Notes under the pieces: generated by a model
The model's input: the letters and a program-made list of their open reading frames with translations, nothing else
Told to the model about the DNA's origin: nothing
The model's database searches: none
Part shown: positions 2,873-13,600 of the stretch, piece after piece
Position numbering within the stretch: position 1 is the stretch's first letter
Layout: each line of letters begins with the position of its first letter
From: Lepidodermella squamata
Lineage: Eukaryota > Animalia > Gastrotricha
Direction: 5' to 3'
NCBI GenBank assembly: GCA_047495785.1
Contig: JBLDXI010000017.1
Span: forward strand, 2,046,001-2,110,000
DNA: 64,000 nt
Made by a program: the position numbers and the translations under genes

Positions 2873-5433
2873 CTCGCTGTGACAAATTTTCTTAACTTGA
2901 CTGGCGAAAATTCAGTAGACTCAATTTTCTATCGTTTGCGGCCCTTGACGGCGTCATCTCAGCCATTTTCGCGCGCATTAGTCCACGCGCAAGCTCTAGA
3001 TTTCTATGCAGAGGAAATTGAGCACCTAATATAAGCCGCCTCAATTTTGCTAAGCCCACTGTTCCGGTGACTTGTGACTCGCCATCGTTTGTCAGCTTAT
3101 TCAGCGCCTTTCTGGCTAGTTCTTGATTAAAATGTATCTTTGCGAAAAATACATCATACGATTTCCACGATTTCCGCGGCGCTACTTCGATAGTTTGTTG
3201 ATAACATGGCCGGGTACATTTTCAAATACACATCCGTCTTTTACGGGATTTAACTGTTACAAATAAAATTGTGTGCATGCCACCGAACGGCCGCACAATC
3301 CGCGAATTTCTCGGAGGGTTAAGCTCGTGGCGTGGTGTGTTGCTTGTTTCACAAGCCTGTGTACACAGTATACGACGTGCCGTATATTCCGAAATATGTC
3401 GGCAATGTTCGTTATAAATCCAAAGAAAGAACAAAACGGGGTCGTATTCAGGACGTGCCCTTATTACGGACGGTTGTCGTTATTGTTTCGAATGAAAAAA
3501 TTGAAAGAAAAATCGAATTTAGGGCTTCGTAATATGTCACTCGTCAACTTAGATTTCATTTTCTATTTTCTCATTCTCGTCTTGATCTTCTTCGACGATG
3601 GAATAGATTTGTTCGCCGGGTTTGAAGATTTGATCAAGCAACTAGCCGGCGGCCTCGCAGGGCTTCCAGCGCGGAAACAAGGGATCGTGTCATCTTCCCA
3701 ACCATCCCGCTTGACGCTTGAAAGATTTGACGATCATCGGCGCTAAGGGATTCCCAAGTGATGATAATCCACTCGCACACCAAAAGGAGGGATGGTGCCT
3801 TCGGCGTTACATAATTATGTTGATTAGCAAAATTAAGCGATGCAACATTAAAAATCAAGAGCATGAGTTACAAGTTTGGTCATGAGCCATTATCAATTCA
3901 AATCGGCCCTCGGAGGAGTCGTATTCGGGGCGTGCTACCATTTCGGGTAAGGGAAGGGGTAAGGGCAATAACGAAACGGTAATTCTCGTTGGTTTTATTT
4001 TCGTTGTTCGCGCTGTGGAGCCTGCACATCAATTTTCTTTGTCTGAACTGTAGTGGGCATTTGGAAATTGGTAAACGTAATATAGCTTGTGAATTTATAG
4101 CTATCACGAAAATTGAAAAAAACCCAATTTTCGATTATTTATATCGATTGATTACGGATGTCTAGCGAATCGCTTTGTTCAATCAGAAAAATCAGTTAAG
4201 AAAATAAACGCAGAGTTTGGGTTTCGTGGAGTTTCGTGGCTTTTAAAACTACGTCGTGCAGAAAAGCGCGAGTCCGCATATACCGTATTCCGTGTTTGTT
4301 CCAATAGCAGCCCGGGCTATTAACTTTGCACCACCTGCACGTTCCTGTCATTCCCTAACACTTTTATTTTTGCATTTTCTCAGCTCTCCAGAGCAGCTGC
4401 TGATCACGACGAGCTCTTTCAAATGCAGCAGCGAAACGGAAGCGAAAAACAACAAAAACAAAAAACCAGTCCGAATGGAGCTACAGCGACGATTTGAGGT
4501 TGAAGGTTTGCATTTTCACTTGATTTGGGCTCAAATTGCTGTCTTCTTGTAACGCACTTGGTTGGTTGGGCGCTCACTTGACTCTATCGCCGTGTAACAA
4601 TTGAATATATTGGCTTAGAATATAATATGGCCTTGCTCGAAATTCGGTCTAACCGACCCTGCAAGGCAGCTACCATCTCCTTAACTGATGGACTCACCTG
4701 GTAAAAACCAGGCCCTCTCTTCCTCCCTTCTCCCCCGACGTCTCGGGTTCTTATCTTTGGTTTAGATAGCCTTGTTGCCGCTGATATGCGAGTTGCCCAG
4801 GGAAGATATATTCATCTTCGTAACGGCGGAATACGCCATGCAGCATACCTACTTCGCCCAACTCTGCCCTGTTGGATCAACTTTTGCATTACTAGTTCTC
4901 TAGTTCATACTAGTTCGATGGAGCAAATGTTTGCAGCGCGAAGCATTTCATCGCTCGAAAATTAAATCGCAACTTTCGGGGAAACGCCCAATTATCCTAG
5001 TTTTTGTTCACACTCTATTATGGTATATTCCCCTTCGGCTGCGGCAATCTGATTTCTTCATTTTCGAGATAGCCGCTTTTGCGATATAAACATATTTGTG
5101 TTTGATCATACTTCTGATTTTTCATTAATAATCAAGTCTATACAGCAATAAAGGTGTTGCGCAATCGCCGCGAACGATATGCCAAATGTTATAACCTCGT
5201 GTAAAAGCTGCGGTTATGCCATTGTAAGGAAATCTAAATAGAAATTTGCGCCCATTGTCAATGCGCCATCCTTTTTGGAATCGCTGATTGCGTAGGAAGT
5301 CGCTTAGTATAATAGCGCTCAAGATATCCATATTGATATGAATCTAAGGGGCTACATTTTTGACTGGTCGATAGTCGATAATAGATGTGTAATTTGTCCA
5401 ATAATTTACCCATAGACCATAGATAAACGTTTA

Positions 5434-8007
5434 ATGCTGCAAGGGTCCACCGACGACTGGATAATATGCCGCTTGTTTCTGTCGTCGACCTTCAAAGATT
5501 TTAACAGCGAACGCGAGCTATTGATTAAAAAGGTAGTTCCAGAACTATGTGAGTTTGCTAATCAATACGGCATCCACATTGTCGATGTCGATCTGAGGTG
5601 GGGTGTGCCAAAGGATTCATCATCCGTATATACTATCGAAGCATGCCTTGGAGAGCTCGACCGCTCTATTCAGGAAGCCCCTAACGGGCAACCGTTATTC
5701 CTATGTTTATTGGGCGAACGCTATGGCTGGGTGCCAAATCCCACGGAACTTCCCACTGATTTGCTTGAGCGCTATCAATGGCCGGTTGATGCCGATCCGT
5801 TGCCTTCTATTACCCATATGGAAGTTCTTTACGGCGCCCTTAACCGCGGAAATCGAAATGCGCTCTTCTGCTTTCGCTCTCCATCATTTCTATCTGCAGT
5901 CGATGAGAGGATTTCCCAGTCTTCATTTGTCGATGATCTATCCACCCAACGCGCCCTGCTGAAGAAGGAGATATTTGCAAGAGTTGTCGATCCCGACTCT
6001 CAAATACTGGACGATTACCCTGTTTCGATCGTAGGAGAGACTGAGAATCAGGTCGAGTTGGGTTTCAATGAAGAGTTCAGCGCATATATTGTCGATTTCT
6101 TTAAGCGAGCACTACAAAGACAATATCCTGAGCGTTTTGAACGGCGTTTCACGGCAGCGGACCATATCAGTCTTGAAAATCACCACCAGACACAATTCTT
6201 GCGTCGCCAGAATCAGCTGCTGTTCGCAATGGATAGTCTTTGCTCGTGGTTGACTGAAGAGATTTTCGGCAATAACTCGCCTGAATTAGACTTGAATGAA
6301 CTAACTGAGCTGCTAAACAAGACAACTATTTCAAAAGGAGATTTGGAAATAAATCTTGGGCACTGGTCTGGCGCTGAATCTTGGCCATCACGGTTGATTT
6401 GCCTGGCGTCAGCGCCTGGCTACGGCAAAACCTCCTTACTGTGCGCCTTGGCTGATCACTTAGCTCGCTTGAAGCCGGAAGCCAATTTATTTTACCACTT
6501 CTGCGGATCTGTAGTTTCCGACGATTCTACAAGCTACGCCTTATTTCTTCGCCGGCTGAACGTCTTTTTCGCTGACAGTTTATCGCGAATTAATACGGAA
6601 TCTGAGAAAGCAGAAGCCGGTGGAAACCAGAGCTGTGCCGACGTCGTCGAACTCTCGGTTGAAATGGCTCGATTGAAGAGCTGGTTGAAACAGGTGGAAT
6701 GTGTAGAAAATCATCAATTTGTCATTCTAATCGACGCTTTGGAGCATTTTCGAGAGCTGAGGGATTCATCTCAATGCACCTGGGTCAACTTTCTGCCTGT
6801 CCGCTTCCCTAAAAACTGTCGAGTGCTTTTCACACGAACTCTTACAGAACCAGCTGAAATTTCAGCTTTAGACTATTCCCTTGCTTGGCTAGATCAATTC
6901 TGCTTGCTCGCCCAGGTCCATTTAATTAGAATGCCTGGCACTTCTGCTGAATTACGTAGCGCAATAGCGGAAAAATATTTTTCTACTTATAACAAAAAAT
7001 TGGACCCAGAACAGATGAGCAAGTTGACTTCAAAACAGGGTGCTCAAGTTGCTTTGTGGCTGCGTCTTGCTTGCGAAGAACTGCGCGTTTTCGGCGATTT
7101 TAGCAGAGTAACGCAGCTTATTGTTGATTTAGAAGAAACTCTATCAGGTTTAATCAGCCAAATACTGCTGCGACTTATTTCCGAGTCACCTCAATTGCCG
7201 ATGAAACGCTTTTTAATGTTCATGGCCGTTTCGCCGAGAGCTTTGCCGGAATCAGAATTGCCTTCGCTTTTAGCCGACGAAATTACGGGTGATCCTCTGG
7301 CGTCGTTGGATTTAGCTAAGCTGTATCGCATGTTGAAACCCTATTTGATTTTATCGAAGAATAAAGCTTGCCCCACAGTAGCTCCGTTCCACAACGCATT
7401 TGTGAAAGCGTCTGCTAAATTAGGCAATGTTTTCGAAACTAAAGCAGAGTTGGCTCGCTTCATTTTGAACAAAGCTGACCAGAACTTGAAGGAAGATTGG
7501 ATTGTAACTATCATGGATCTGCTTTGGGAAAGCAATCATCGGGAAGAATTGTTGGATAATTTGCAAAATAATGACTTGTTCCGTCTTCCCAATAAGAAGT
7601 TCCATCGACAACTCTATCTAGATAGATATCGTTGTAAAATGATGGTTATGACAGCTACTTTAGGCATTAAGCTGGAAGCTTGTATGGGCTGTGCTAATAA
7701 ATTCGACCACGCGCGGCGCGTACCACTCGCTAATTGTTGCCTGCTTTGCAAAGACGTGCTGCCTATGCAATTCGCCGGCTTTCAACCTTTGAAGCCTGCT
7801 ATTCTGTGCATGCATCACCCTCAGATGATGTTTAAACAAGGCTTTTGTTGGTTTTGTAAATCGTGGTGGGGCCCATTCTACAACATGTGGAAGCCTCTTT
7901 ATTTGTGCCAAACTTGTGATTTCGGAACAAGCTCTTTTGTTCCACGGTGCTGCTTTGCTTCCACTGAGATTTCTATCAGAAATGTCGCGCTTAAAACCGA
8001 GAAATGA
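5434..8007 (+). CDS. DUF4062 + NACHT/STAND P-loop ATPase (TEP1/NPHP3/NWD-like N-terminus) with C-terminal PHF5/Rds3-like Zn domain; 857 aa, intronless
   Basis: RLFLSSTFKDFNSERELL...VDVDLRWGV...LGERYGWVP is DUF4062. Walker A APGYGKTS, Walker B VILIDALE. LWLRLACEELRVFGDF is the TEP1-like helical region. C-terminal C..CMGC..CLLC..CMHH..CWFC..CQTC..C at 7630-7956. AATAAA at 8085-8090. Confidence 0.9.
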   Translation: MLQGSTDDWIICRLFLSSTFKDFNSERELLIKKVVPELCEFANQYGIHIVDVDLRWGVPKDSSSVYTIEACLGELDRSIQEAPNGQPLFLCLLGERYGWVPNPTELPTDLLERYQWPVDADPLPSITHMEVLYGALNRGNRNALFCFRSPSFLSAVDERISQSSFVDDLSTQRALLKKEIFARVVDPDSQILDDYPVSIVGETENQVELGFNEEFSAYIVDFFKRALQRQYPERFERRFTAADHISLENHHQTQFLRRQNQLLFAMDSLCSWLTEEIFGNNSPELDLNELTELLNKTTISKGDLEINLGHWSGAESWPSRLICLASAPGYGKTSLLCALADHLARLKPEANLFYHFCGSVVSDDSTSYALFLRRLNVFFADSLSRINTESEKAEAGGNQSCADVVELSVEMARLKSWLKQVECVENHQFVILIDALEHFRELRDSSQCTWVNFLPVRFPKNCRVLFTRTLTEPAEISALDYSLAWLDQFCLLAQVHLIRMPGTSAELRSAIAEKYFSTYNKKLDPEQMSKLTSKQGAQVALWLRLACEELRVFGDFSRVTQLIVDLEETLSGLISQILLRLISESPQLPMKRFLMFMAVSPRALPESELPSLLADEITGDPLASLDLAKLYRMLKPYLILSKNKACPTVAPFHNAFVKASAKLGNVFETKAELARFILNKADQNLKEDWIVTIMDLLWESNHREELLDNLQNNDLFRLPNKKFHRQLYLDRYRCKMMVMTATLGIKLEACMGCANKFDHARRVPLANCCLLCKDVLPMQFAGFQPLKPAILCMHHPQMMFKQGFCWFCKSWWGPFYNMWKPLYLCQTCDFGTSSFVPRCCFASTEISIRNVALKTEK

Positions 8008-8128
8008 GATGGTTCTATAATTATTCCCGCTTTCTAATCAGCTTTAAATTTTGCAATCGATTTTATTATCCGTGCTTTCGCTCAAATAAATTATCCTATA
8101 TTTAATTAATTTTAGTTTTTTTAAAACA

Positions 8129-10504
8129 ATGGCTAACGCCTATTTTCGACTTCGAGCTGTTCTTACCGGCCACGAAAAAGACGTTCGATGTCTGTCGTCT
8201 GGTAGTGGACTCGCCGATGATCTCTCAACTTGTCTCATCTCCGGCTCTCGTGATCTAACGATTCGATTGTGGAAACCGAACGATTTCGACGTTTCTTTCA
8301 TGGAAAATTTCTGTGCCGGTGGTCATTCAAGCTACGTTGCCTGCGTTTGCGTCGTGCCGTGCGGCACTCAGTCTTACGAAGCCGGTGCCATAGTTAGCGG
8401 GGCAGGCGATGGGACAATTCTTGTCCACAATTTCAGCTCACCCGAGCCTGTTGTTCGCATCAATAATGCGCATGAAAATACGGTATCGGCCTTATATACA
8501 GGAGCCTCAGGTTTCATGGTCTCCGGGTCGTGGGATCAAACCGCCAAGGTCTGGATGAATTTCAAACCGATTATGACGCTGAAAGGCCACGAAGCTGCTG
8601 TCTGGGCTGTTCTCGGCATCCAGCAAAGCGGCCAAATAATCACAGGATCAGCCGATAAAACCATTCGAATTTGGTCTGCGGGTCAGTGCCAAAAAGTGTT
8701 GAAAGGTCACACGGACTGCGTAAGGGGTCTGGCCTTACTACCCCCTACCCCTGACCACCCTGAGCAGACCCTGCTGTCTTGCTCAAACGACGCGACAATT
8801 CGTCGTTGGAACTTGGTTACTGGTGAGTGTATCGCGACATACCAGGGTCATACGAATTTTATTTATTCAATCGCGAGCGGCATTGATTCAATCAGCGGCC
8901 AGCCGTTTTTCATCAGCGCCGGTGAAGATAGGACTGTTCGAATCTGGAACCCGGCTGACAGCTCGGCGCCGGTTCAAACGATCCCGCACGCCGCTACATC
9001 AGTCTGGAGTGTTTGCATCCTCCCTAATGGTGATATCGCCAGCGGGTCAAGCGACGGGCAAATCACGGTGTTCACCGTCGCGCCCGAACGCGTTGCCTCT
9101 GCTGAAGTTGTTGCTGAATTCGAAAAGGCGGTTTCGAAAACTGCTATGCCCGCGCAAACGTTTGGTGGCATCAAATTCGCCGACTTGCCTGGTCCGGATG
9201 TTTTAATGTACCCAGGCAAGCGTGACGGTCAAACCGTTATGGTCCGTTTTGGTGAAACAGAAAAAGACGGCCATGTCGAGTGTCACATGTGGTCGGGTGC
9301 TGAAGAGCGGTGGAATTTAGTTGGAACCGTGGTTGGTGCGAACGAAACTGGCGGCTCTGGAGGCTCCGGTGGGAAAGTTTCGTACCTTGGTAAAGACTAC
9401 GATTACGTTTTCGATGTTGATATTGACGGCCAGACGTTGAAATTGCCGTACAACGCACACGAAAATCCGTGGGTTGCTGCGAATAATTTCATCGAGAAAA
9501 ACGAGTTGAATCAAGCTTTTCTGGAGGAAGTGGCTAATTTCATCACTAAAAACACGCAATCCATCACAATTGGCGCGCCTGAGTGGAGTGGAAACGTCGA
9601 CCCGTTTACAGGGGGTAGCAGCTACCATACGGGCGGCGGCAATCAACAGCCGCAAAATGGCCATAAAAACGGCCATCACCCACCTGAAGTCGAATATTAC
9701 CCTGAGAAGAAATATTTATACTTCGAAACTGCTCCAAATTTAGCTGGTCTTAGGGCTAAATTGTTGGAATTTGACGCTGCCCATGCGCCGCATTCAGTCG
9801 GAGGTGACGTTCTGAACGGTTTAGTCGACGCAGTTGCTGGTCTCAGCGAAACGTTCGATGGAATGCTGAAAGAAGAAAATGTGCAATTACTCAGTGAGCT
9901 GATTTCTTGGCCCGATAGCCATCTCGTGCCTGTTTTGGACTTGACTCGAGTTGTTGCTAAAAATGAAGACATCATTGGGCTCTTGTTCAAGAACCCGCGC
10001 TTCCTCCCTGCATTGCTCAAGCAACTGATGCCGGAAAAGCCGACTTCGAACCAATTTTTGACCCTTCGTATCCTATGCAATGTTTTCGCGTCGGCCCCAG
10101 GTCGTATGATAATGCTGGCAAATGCGCCTAAAATCATCGGTGGTCTCGAAGGTCTCATTGATTCGAATAATAAGAGCGTTCAAATCGCCCTTTCGACTAT
10201 TCTACTAAATTACGCTGTGATTGGCTTTAACGAAAAACTCGCTGAGATAAAATTACTGCAAAGCGTTGTGAATACAATTCGATTTACGCTGGAACGTGGC
10301 GCCAAGGTGGTTGATATCGAGGCAATTTTCCGCCTAGTTGTCGCTCTCGGTACGCTTGTCAGCATCGGCCAAGCCGCTGTGACGGAAGCTGTTAAACAGA
10401 ACTGTTCCAATTTAGTGAAAACCGTTGGAAAAGACGTGCCTTCGGAAGAAAAGCGAATTCGTGATAGCTGCAAATCGCTTTCATTGCTTCTTTCAGCCTC
10501 TTGA
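8129..10504 (+). CDS. PLAA: phospholipase A2-activating protein (Doa1/Ufd3 ortholog): WD40-PFU-PUL; 791 aa, intronless
   Basis: N-terminal WD40 repeats (GHEKDVR, SGSWDQTAKVW, GHTDCVRGL, SCSNDATIRRW). PFU domain GKDYDYVFDVDIDG..LKLPYN..ENPWVAA..FI. C-terminal PUL/ARM region (PVLDLTR, LRILCNVF, FRLVVALGTL). Confidence 0.95.
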   Translation: MANAYFRLRAVLTGHEKDVRCLSSGSGLADDLSTCLISGSRDLTIRLWKPNDFDVSFMENFCAGGHSSYVACVCVVPCGTQSYEAGAIVSGAGDGTILVHNFSSPEPVVRINNAHENTVSALYTGASGFMVSGSWDQTAKVWMNFKPIMTLKGHEAAVWAVLGIQQSGQIITGSADKTIRIWSAGQCQKVLKGHTDCVRGLALLPPTPDHPEQTLLSCSNDATIRRWNLVTGECIATYQGHTNFIYSIASGIDSISGQPFFISAGEDRTVRIWNPADSSAPVQTIPHAATSVWSVCILPNGDIASGSSDGQITVFTVAPERVASAEVVAEFEKAVSKTAMPAQTFGGIKFADLPGPDVLMYPGKRDGQTVMVRFGETEKDGHVECHMWSGAEERWNLVGTVVGANETGGSGGSGGKVSYLGKDYDYVFDVDIDGQTLKLPYNAHENPWVAANNFIEKNELNQAFLEEVANFITKNTQSITIGAPEWSGNVDPFTGGSSYHTGGGNQQPQNGHKNGHHPPEVEYYPEKKYLYFETAPNLAGLRAKLLEFDAAHAPHSVGGDVLNGLVDAVAGLSETFDGMLKEENVQLLSELISWPDSHLVPVLDLTRVVAKNEDIIGLLFKNPRFLPALLKQLMPEKPTSNQFLTLRILCNVFASAPGRMIMLANAPKIIGGLEGLIDSNNKSVQIALSTILLNYAVIGFNEKLAEIKLLQSVVNTIRFTLERGAKVVDIEAIFRLVVALGTLVSIGQAAVTEAVKQNCSNLVKTVGKDVPSEEKRIRDSCKSLSLLLSAS

Positions 10505-10698: not shown

Positions 10699-13600
10699 AT
10701 GCCGTCTATTATTCGATTTGAACCATTTTCCGGGGCGAGAGATGAAGGGCCCCTGTGTTACATGCTGCAGGTGGATGAATTCAAGTTCCTGCTTGATTGC
10801 GGCTGGGATGAATCGTTTTCAATGTCCTATCTCGATAATCTGAAGCCCTACATTCAGGATATTGATGCTGTACTGCTGTCGTACCCGGATATGTACCATT
10901 TAGGCGCGCTGCCGTATTTGGTGGGAAAATGCGGCTTGGACTGTCCGATTTTCGCTACGATTCCCGTGCATAAAATGGGTCAAATGTTCATGTACGACTT
11001 GTATCAGGTTAGATTCTTATTTTATTTTATCTAACTAATTATTCGTGGTAAAAAACGAGAGTTCCAGTTGTTGAATCTTTTCGTTATTTATGGGAATTAA
11101 ATCGCTACTTCATTGAAATTATTTATTTGGGATAATAAATTGGAGTTCTTCCTACTGATGGACTGTCATTTCTAAAATCAATTGCGTGACGAATCAGTTA
11201 TCTGTCTCAGACTTCTGATGGCTTCCAAGAGGCTCGTTAATTGTTCCAAGTCACCGCTTTTCTTGGTACCTTGCGGGCAGGAAGCTTCATCGCTATTGTC
11301 TGGACAGTCTTTCCAGCCGTCACAAATGTCTCTTTGGCGTAAGCATCGACCAGTTGTAGCACATGTCATCGCGGGGCATGTCATTTTTGCGTTTATGTCG
11401 GCTTCGCATAATGGGCGGGGATAACTCGCTTGATCAGACACGTCGTTCAAGGTTGTCCCGTCGGTCTAAAAAAGACTCGAAAATGTTATTTACTGCGAAA
11501 AAAACGAACATTTGAAATGTGTCCCGAATTCCATTGACGAAGCTCGAAAATGTAAATGACCATCCAAAATGACTCACTAATTGCAACAGTTTAGCCGAGC
11601 AGGTAAATTTTCGAAAATAAGTTGAAAATATAACAACTCGAAATTTATAGGAAAATTACACCTTGAAATCAAATTTCAGAATTTTCCGAGGTGATGTGTA
11701 GCTTCGAAAACGTGGTTTTGTCCAAAATTACCTCAAATTACATAAATGAGTGAAATATCTTACGCTGTACGAGACATAATTTTCTTTTCCGTTGCCGTCG
11801 CTAGGCTCACCCGGGTACCAAACGGATTGAGGTAACGTGAGTTGTGTTCCGTCTCGCCACTTGAAAATAGAGCGATTATTTGGATCTCGTCTTAGGCCGA
11901 TCCAATAATCTGCCAACCGAGACCTCATGCTCTGGATGTAAATAGTTGCCGCATTCAGTTCATCAGCAGTTTTAAACGTGGCTAGCTTGAAGGCCGGGCC
12001 AAGTTTTTCGGTACAAGGGTCGACTGTTTCGCCGATCCTGTTTTGACTGCCGTGAAATACTAGCAGCCTACGGCCTTGAAACACGCACTGTTGGCCAGTT
12101 TCATCCGACCAATCATGGCAATCATTCACCCCATCGCACATATCATAATATTTCACGATACGCCCGTTTTCGCAATGAAACTTATCCCCGTCTCGCCGCG
12201 CAGGTACTCGGACCGTCGTTGTAGTTGTTGGTCTAGTGGTGGTAGTAGTGGTAGTGGTGGTGGTTGTTGTTGTTGTAGGTCTTGTTGGCTCCTCGCACGA
12301 TTGCAGCCTTCCATAAGGCAGCAAGAAGTTGCGGCAATATCGATCCAATGCCAACCTCAGACCGTATTGCCTTTGCTCAATGTAATGGTCGTACGGAAAG
12401 TTTCTGGCTGTCAGAAGTCGGACAATTGGTTGCAGGTAAACGCTAACCGGAACCGGGTTGTCGAATGCGAGTTGCGACCACGTGACTGGGTTCAGGTCTG
12501 GGGGAGGCCTTGAACCGATCGAATAAATTCTTCGGGATCTAGCCACCTGAATGTTGTTCGTTTCTGTCAATGTGTGACTACCATCTCTAGTCGAGTTGTT
12601 GGAATAAGTTCCGCCCAAAATGCTACCACCTCCATTGTGCATACCATTATCACTCGATTCGACGATGCCTCCAACGTTTTTTCGGATAGCGAGGCTGTCG
12701 CCGAATAAGGCACCCATCGCCACTGTTGTTGTTACATGGGTGCCGTAATCGGCGATAAAATCGCCATACTGGCTCTCATTTCCGTAGATCGAATTGATCG
12801 GTAGTCGCGACACCGCTCTGCGGAAAGCTGGCGTCAGCTCTGCATCGTTGAAGTCGAGCCGAGCTGTATAAACTGTGATCGAGCTGACCGTTTCACTGAT
12901 TTGACTGTGTTCTAAATTCATGACTTCCTTCACCCGGTTATAATCACTGCTGCCGACAAATGCTAGAGTGTGGCTCTCGCTATTCGTGCCGCCGTTTGAC
13001 AAGTGGCCGCTACCGTGGATGTATTTACTTCTCAGGGATTCGACGTAATCTTTAGCGTTTGACACGATTTCAACATTGGTTTGAATGCTGACTGCATCGC
13101 CGAGTTGAACGTGCACATATTCAGGCATTTGATACCGCTCGTCTTCTGTCAAATCGCCGCAGTAGCGATTCAAGTCAAAGACGGGCAGTTTCATGAGGAA
13201 ACCCGGGTCCATGGACGCTGAGGTGGGGCGAGGATTCGCGAATACAATGTCGTAGCCCGATCCGAGACGGCCGATGTTAGGCATCCTGGGTTTAACGCCT
13301 CGCAGCGCGGCTGTTGCAGCTGCACATTGCTTATCGATGGCCGCTTTTTGCGCCTGTAATCGCTCGAAATAGCTGATAGTCGTCTGCGGAGGGGCTGTGA
13401 TTGGAAGCTCTCTCAAGGTCGGTGGTGGTGGTGTAAAAGTGGTTACTGGATATCGAATTGTTGTTACAGGTTGATTCGGTACACTGTTGCTCACTGTCAA
13501 CAGAGAAAAAAAAGACCCGAAAAAATCCATTTGTTATTATTGCTAGTCCCCCGTTTTAGCGATCATCTATATCATTTTATAACGCATGGTACAGAAAATC

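Follow-up and report, generated by a model that had tools for sequence, protein, structure and literature searches.

A Holozoan NIR-NACHT Protein Family with a Twelve-Ligand C-Terminal Domain Resembling PHF5A/Rds3 in Its Predicted Fold

Known NIR-NACHT proteins and the gastrotrich gene

The DUF4062 domain, also named NIR, is a TIR-like NAD+-hydrolyzing enzyme (NADase) found in human TEP1 and, among bacteria, in the Avs and Swarozyc systems; it is switched on by oligomerization, and its activity climbs with concentration (10.64898/2026.05.01.722283; 10.64898/2026.09.04.749371). It was not until 2026 that the domain was shown to act as a NADase in bacterial immunity and in human TEP1, and it has many carriers among animal proteins resembling nucleotide-binding leucine-rich-repeat receptors (NLRs). 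The gene described here lies at 5434..8007 on the + strand of a 64,000-nucleotide stretch of DNA from the gastrotrich Lepidodermella squamata (contig JBLDXI010000017.1 of assembly GCA_047495785.1, positions 2,046,001 to 2,110,000), which is referred to as the window. Its product of 857 amino acids (aa) consists of a NIR domain, a NACHT ATPase, a linker, and a Cys-rich tail. The architecture and the family assignment, namely, a NIR-NACHT protein of the class of signal transduction ATPases that have numerous domains (STAND) with a C-terminal zinc tail, are almost certain. We favor, with modest confidence, the reading that the protein represents a holozoan, NLR-like STAND family composed of NIR, NACHT, a helical linker, and a basic C-terminal domain with three zinc sites of the PHF5 type.

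Several described proteins share parts of this organization. TEP1 has the same NADase head with the catalytic Glu and R976, followed by a NACHT ATPase; however, the window protein is without the TROVE/vWA RNA-binding N-terminus and the WD40 propellers of TEP1 and carries the zinc tail at its C-terminus. NWD1/NWD2, NPHP3, and the DDB_G0287407-like NIR-NACHT proteins have the N-terminal two-thirds in common with it, but they end in WD40 or TPR arrays, whereas the family described here ends in a single domain of ~110 aa with three putative zinc sites. The bacterial defence systems with a NIR effector (Avs2-NIR, Swarozyc, Vulcan, and Vesta) combine this effector with a sensor, in Avs with a STAND ATPase, and are activated by assembly. 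Their sensors are repeats that bind phage proteins or other domains, with no PHF5-like zinc domain reported, whereas the present family is holozoan. Neither of the two DUF4062 preprints (10.64898/2026.05.01.722283; 10.64898/2026.09.04.749371) mentions zinc, cysteine, or PHF5. Text searches of the literature that combined PHF5 with either NACHT or STAND, or that used the family's database name, returned nothing relevant, and no paper describing the family was found. What is new here is a NIR-NACHT STAND protein whose domain in the sensor position is undescribed and whose tail is without a Pfam model.

The gene is intronless and complete; its ATG lies 21 nt downstream of an in-frame stop (5413-5415), and its TGA stop codon occupies 8005-8007. 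The NIR domain covers aa 9-169 (5458..5940, +). Pfam places DUF4062 (PF13271) at aa 13-102 with 31.3 bits (cut-off 24.7), and phmmer matches the head to 11gz_A, the NADase domain solved for human TEP1, at E=2e-21. The numbering of this chain was set (offset 893) through R908, R954, and R976, the residues named in 10.64898/2026.05.01.722283, and in the resulting alignment the catalytic Glu of TEP1, E1008 (10.64898/2026.05.01.722283), corresponds to E130 of the window protein (codon 5821..5823, +), which sits in the motif S-I-T-H-M-E. A Glu is found at this place in 31/31 family members covering the column, and R96, the counterpart of TEP1 R976, is kept in 29/29.

The ATPase covers aa 318-517 (6385..6984, +). 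Pfam recognizes it as NPHP3_N at aa 318-467 (29.7 bits, cut-off 24.8) and as NACHT at aa 320-517, the latter with 22.1 bits, under the cut-off of 26.7. Its Walker A motif is GYGKTS (aa 329-334, 6418-6435, +) and its Walker B motif is ILIDALEH (aa 431-438, 6724-6747, +); among family members, 31 of 36 retain the Walker A Lys and 33 of 37 the Walker B Asp. Between the ATPase and the tail, Pfam and the family alignment define a winged-helix/helical linker without repeats (aa 518-725, 6985..7608, +), which holds W542 and G554, both invariant family-wide, and the motif LWL.LACEELRVFG. By Pfam, there is no WD40, TPR, or LRR repeat anywhere in the protein, aa 518-857 included. An earlier sequence-only reading of the locus had described DUF4062 and NACHT followed by a Cys-rich tail in place of repeats, and both Pfam and the reading of the tail bear this out.

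The C-terminal tail, its relatives, and its transcript

The tail domain (Zn3) occupies aa 726-844 (7609..7965, +), as delimited by invariant alignment columns, a hidden Markov model (HMM) search, and an AlphaFold2 (AF2) model. Its ligands are C734, C750/C753, C769/C772, C792/H795, C805/C808, C825/C828, and C839 (nt 7633-7950), that is, a layout of C, CxxC, CxxC, CxxH, CxxC, CxxC, C. These 12 ligands are enough for three tetrahedral zinc sites, and it is very probable that the tail forms all three; zinc binding itself is what we infer. The domain is basic, with a net charge of +7 here and a family median of +9 over ~115 residues. The sequence-only reading had counted the same 12 Cys/His ligands in PHF5-like order, and this count proved exact and invariant in relatives. 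It had also called the layout exactly C,(CxxC)x5,C; the order of ligands stands, but the third pair is C-x2-H, with His at motif 3 throughout the family, and the ligands are spaced more widely than in PHF5.

The ligands are the most constant part of the domain. In an alignment (A1) of the tails of 10 unselected relatives, which are 17-27% identical, the 12 ligand positions are the sole invariant columns. In a larger tail alignment (A3), they are again invariant, with a mean column identity of 27% and highly variable loops. The 12-ligand pattern recurs in 83 of 107 search hits checked; the other 24 stand unclassified one by one, and many of them begin inside the domain or are incomplete. Judged from these alignments, the pattern is far more than chance would give. 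The tail alone gave a blank word search and matched no Pfam or NCBIfam model.

Relatives spanning 96-99% of the length of the whole protein occur in a brittle star, amphioxus, Trichoplax, and others. When an HMM of ten tails was run against 1.84 billion cluster representatives, it found 102 proteins at E<=0.001, in nearly all of which the domain lies at the extreme C-terminus. Among the long relatives (n=40), DUF4062 is present in 25 and STAND ATPase families in 26. The named members include echinoderms and a hemichordate (sea cucumber, sea urchins, starfish, and acorn worm), chordates (amphioxus, lamprey, bichir, frog, and newt), snails, jellyfish, Trichoplax, the rotifer relative Seison, and four choanoflagellates. 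Databases label the family “telomerase protein component 1-like” or “TPR repeat-containing protein DDB_G0287407-like”.

Several short hits open with F/L-rich residues and then a Q just before the R-C of the domain, in the manner of a translated polypyrimidine tract and acceptor. One was checked, on a 953-kb eukaryotic contig (L121:2985-3020), and there the tail begins right after a canonical acceptor, ttttcctttttcag, three codons ahead of R-C. The short tail-only “proteins” with such starts are probably fragments of terminal exons. The tail is a discrete module, with a terminal exon of its own in another animal and no intron in this gene.

Expression and variant data came from two public runs containing the stretch, X1 and X2. 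Depth in X2 is even across the stretch, as DNA would give. In X1, it is 1.5-5 upstream of the open reading frame (ORF), ~59 within it, and ~110 in the next gene, and the contigs of X1, which span 5478-7622 and 7654-8105, are free of joints. The second contig ends at 8105, 15 nt downstream of an AATAAA (8085..8090, +), the probable polyadenylation signal of the NIR-NACHT gene. Because of the depth profile, the jointless contigs, and this end point, X1 behaves like RNA, and we guess that it is RNA. On that guess, the tail and the NACHT domain lie on one unspliced transcript. The first X1 contig begins 44 nt past the ATG, where the depth upstream is ~3, and this late start probably reflects poor 5′ coverage. 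The sequence-only reading had named splicing out ahead of the Cys-rich tail as what would count against it; no such event is seen in the jointless contigs of X1, the run guessed to be RNA.

The age of the fusion was examined with trees built from the protein portion N-terminal to the tail. In a tree of 137 rows, all 30 tail-bearers fall in one strongly supported group (support 100), together with a few proteins having TPR repeats or another C-terminus, and the tail character needs 3 changes against ~27 after shuffling. On a smaller tree, of 48 rows, the approximately unbiased (AU) test does not reject one clade made up of the tail-bearers (p=0.36). The branching of the family agrees roughly with that of the species, and the nearest neighbor is a TPR-bearing group of echinoderms and molluscs. 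Since the tail-bearers group together across holozoans in these trees, the fusion of the tail to NIR-NACHT is ancient, fixed since before the animal/choanoflagellate split, and it was probably made once.

In some choanoflagellate members, a PH domain separates the DUF4062 head from the zinc tail. The choanoflagellate relative P0018 falls within the clade, yet an unrelated sequence (with a PF00676 match) takes the place of its tail, and it is possibly a chimeric transcript.

Comparison of the tail with PHF5A/Rds3

PHF5A/Rds3 (PF03660) is an SF3b subunit of the U2 small nuclear ribonucleoprotein. PHF5A is a free protein of 110 aa, whereas the tail is the C-terminus of a STAND protein of 850-1,250 aa. 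In PHF5A, zinc is held by motifs 1+4, by motifs 2+5, and by motif 3 with the first and last Cys, and the chain forms a left-handed trefoil knot; the fold is described as exclusive to PHF5A/Rds3 (PMC5458519). Both domains are basic and present their 12 ligands as a single Cys, five two-ligand knuckles, and a single Cys, with knuckles of the same kind at motifs 1 and 5 (helical) and at motifs 2 and 4 (zinc knuckle). However, the tail scores under the Pfam threshold; motif 3 is C-x2-H in the tail and C-x2-C in PHF5; motifs 1 and 2 are spaced 15 residues apart in the tail and 3 in PHF5; and the first and last ligands are ~106 residues apart against ~75, the loops of the tail being longer throughout.

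The predicted structure points to PHF5A/Rds3. The AF2 model of the tail has a mean predicted local distance difference test score (pLDDT) of 79 with 10 sequences and of 86 with 79 sequences, the latter with a predicted TM-score (pTM) of 0.80. With the better model, PHF5A and yeast Rds3 fill the top 13 rows of Foldseek against PDB (E 0.5-2.2, TM by target 0.36-0.45), and the rows after them are RING, LIM, and FYVE domains with TM <0.25. In a shape search of the ESM Atlas, the best cluster is PF03660, with TM 0.52 by query and 0.66 by target over 83 residues (root-mean-square deviation 3.3 Å); the next cluster reaches <=0.31. PHF5A/Rds3 is the unique fold match by Foldseek, VIA-align, and the Atlas. 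The structural alignments are collinear over 78-83 of ~85 residues, with an identity of 14-18%, roughly that of the ligands alone, and the Z of the match increases from 4.1 to 4.7 as the pLDDT of the model increases from 79 to 86. This collinearity lends indirect support to a putative zinc pairing and trefoil knot of the PHF5A kind in the tail. In the model, motif 1 forms a helical turn and motif 5 a helix, motifs 2 and 4 are zinc knuckles, and the single cysteines sit on terminal strands, in agreement with the published account of PHF5A (PMC5458519). The sequence-only reading had named a tail that models as RING, LIM, or B-box as what would count against it; with the predicted model, RING and LIM domains rank below PHF5A/Rds3. 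Judged on this model, a PHF5A/Rds3-type fold is probable for the tail.

The Atlas cluster that matches best is labeled “Bacteria 50%, commonest Promethearchaeota”, the phylum being known for 2 members only. The label hints at PHF5-like proteins in Asgard archaea or at mislabeled metagenome bins.

The sequence gives a different picture. A match to the PF03660 profile, which the sequence-only reading had proposed as a check, did not materialize: the tail of the window protein has none at E up to 10 (gathering score 26.7 bits), and profile searches of PDB sequences rank C1, GATA, and RING fingers first. Among 79 tails, 7 weakly touch PF03660 (best E 4.4e-4), which makes it the joint highest Pfam family, tied with the C1 domain. 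The match of P0162 (18.9 bits) is confined to profile positions 28-60 and shifted by two motifs, pairing tail motifs 4, 5, and the last Cys with PHF5 motifs 2, 3, and 4.

For a comparison of profiles, a PHF5 set (A4) was assembled by scanning metagenome contigs with a DNA pattern back-translated from ICDECNYG of PHF5A and keeping 18 intronless ORFs; a human-gut metagenome contig (L021) and all ORFs with the animal-type start MAKHHPDLIFCR were left out. A sample of these ORFs was confirmed as PHF5 by Pfam at ~1e-49. Drawn from distant eukaryotes, the PHF5 proteins of this set share 70-87% identity and have 51 invariant columns. Aligned with A3 by hhalign, A4 gives P=8.6e-4 and a probability of 24%, with motifs 2-5 in register, and a global alignment pairs the last Cys too. 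When the Cys columns were fixed and the others shuffled, the score was 13.6 ± 2.7, and 0/100 shuffles reached the native 22.3; therefore, residues other than the ligands contribute. A second control, however, gives no support to collinearity. When the five CxxC blocks of PHF5 were permuted, the native order ranked 99th of 120, and swaps of motifs 3 and 5 reached 35.7 against 22.3. The hhalign match was accordingly rejected as evidence of collinear homology, its score being independent of motif order, and the block permutation indicates a likeness between single knuckles of like kind.

The two knuckles concerned can be recognized by eye. Tail motif 3 (AY.C..H) resembles PHF5 motif 5 (AYYC.EC), and tail motif 5 (LC..C.FG; VRICDQC in P0162) resembles PHF5 motif 3 (VRICDECNYG). 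Such likeness of knuckle kind may reflect the pseudo-threefold build of PHF5, in which units i and i+3 share each zinc, or an internal repeat of old date.

The PHF5-invariant motifs outside the ligands, DS.V.P, DECNYG, DAY, and E.DR.GC, are absent from the tail, where these positions are unconserved. Membership of the tail in the PHF5 family is not supported: it lies under the Pfam threshold, lacks the conserved surface, and is not a free protein of ~110 aa. The tail is an old conserved part of the present family that is without a name, and not a recent copy of PHF5A.

In this regard, the tail could be a three-zinc module specific to the family and of another topology, for example, unknotted consecutive zinc ribbons or treble clefs, its match to PHF5 being an artefact of ligand count and of AlphaFold memory. 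The low rank of the native block order, the out-of-register matches of single sequences, and the C1, GATA, and RING fingers leading the profile searches are all in its favor. The gap between PF03660 and the next Atlas cluster, the collinear alignments over most of the domain, and the rise of Z with model quality are against it, and we consider it a lesser though real chance.

The same observations bear on the function that the sequence-only reading had proposed, an integrated decoy or guard for the spliceosome. On this account, the tail would be a PHF5A decoy reporting attack on spliceosomal SF3b. Integrated decoys do occur in plant NLRs, and the order of ligands and the predicted fold are those of PHF5A. 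However, the extreme conservation of PHF5 contrasts with a tail that shares little beyond the ligands with it, does not keep the PHF5-invariant motifs, carries His in place of Cys at motif 3 throughout the family, and has loops >=30 residues longer in total. The module is, moreover, an ancient domain fixed in one clade and not a recent integration. The decoy account is thus highly improbable.

Least likely of all is a cross-brace finger of RING, PHD, or B-box type, acting as an E3 ligase or as a reader of protein marks. A weak profile match to the RING of RNF13 (E=0.061), a weak match to zf-C3HC4_3 in 3 members, and a language-model search of the Atlas leaning to PHD-type at 0.81, under the trust level of the tool, would suggest it. 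The arrangement of RING and PHD fingers, with eight ligands for two zinc sites and 2-3 residues separating ligand 4 from ligand 5, is not that of the tail; nor do the low RING scores of the structure search favor it.

Possible role of the tail and the neighboring gene

The C-terminal position in STAND proteins is usually that of the sensor. The order of effector, STAND ATPase, and input is that of Avs, TEP1, and NLR-like proteins, and a model of ligand-triggered assembly is proposed for the NIR-NACHT-tail family. In this model, the zinc tail would bind a ligand, for which a polyanion such as RNA is the likeliest kind and a protein the alternative; binding would release an oligomerization driven by NACHT; and oligomerization would cluster the NIR domains and turn on the hydrolysis of NAD+. 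A polyanion or RNA is the first guess for the ligand because the tail is basic family-wide and PHF5A touches RNA, with contacts to U2 snRNA and intron RNA (PMC5458519). A sensor role with NADase output may be correct, our belief in it falling a little short of even.

The main functional alternative is a constitutive RNP tether, in which the tail would be a tether or assembly module on RNA or a ribonucleoprotein (RNP), as TROVE ties TEP1 to vault RNA, or a self-association module, rather than a sensor. The basic charge of the tail and the RNA contacts of PHF5A would suit such a role, and TEP1, the nearest relative of the head with a solved structure, is a component of an RNP. The low copy number in most looked-up species and the rough agreement of the family and species trees also fit. 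The usual sensor function of the C-terminal position and the great variation of the tail loops speak against it, and the tether is rather unlikely in our estimate.

Several points weigh against the reading of the family as NLR-like STAND proteins with a PHF5-type zinc domain. The fold match was obtained with a predicted model, on which the putative zinc pairing and knot depend as well, and AlphaFold may be recalling PHF5A from the ligand pattern alone. Profiles of 10 or 79 tails did not find PHF5A among PDB sequences, and at the sequence level there is no order-specific homology between the tail and PHF5. As to the head, the counterpart of TEP1 R908 is Lys here and varies across the family, and human NWD1, NWD2, and NPHP3 are inactive as NADases in vitro despite carrying the domain, so that the conserved Glu does not prove NADase activity. 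Most looked-up species have one or few copies, unlike the large expansions of arms-race receptors. Finally, run X1 is assigned to RNA by guess only.

The bolder form of this reading, that the tail is a true second family with the knotted PHF5 fold and serves as the RNA or polyanion input of an ancient, animal-wide NADase-NACHT switch, is speculative and on the unlikely side. If true, a second and very divergent PHF5-fold family would bear on the origin of knotted zinc proteins, and there would be a holozoan immune or stress sensor, from choanoflagellates to amphibians, that turns nucleic-acid recognition into NAD+ depletion. The family is, in addition, a compact and repeat-free version of the NIR carriers with a single small domain in the sensor position, which makes it experimentally easy to handle. 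The tail would also give Pfam a new domain, now hidden under the label “telomerase protein component 1-like”.

The two runs list 20 variants within the ORF, of which 15 are synonymous and 5 nonsynonymous; this excess of synonymous changes fits purifying selection.

The next gene on the same strand is an intronless orthologue of PLAA/Doa1/Ufd3 (8129-10504, +), whose 791-aa product has a WD40 propeller and PFU and PUL domains. It begins 121 nt past the stop codon of the NIR-NACHT gene, with ttttag directly 5′ of its ATG, and its X1 depth is ~2x that of the NIR-NACHT gene upstream. The two genes may form an operon-like pair resolved by trans-splicing. A further ORF of 600 aa is present in the window at 11728-13530 on the - strand.

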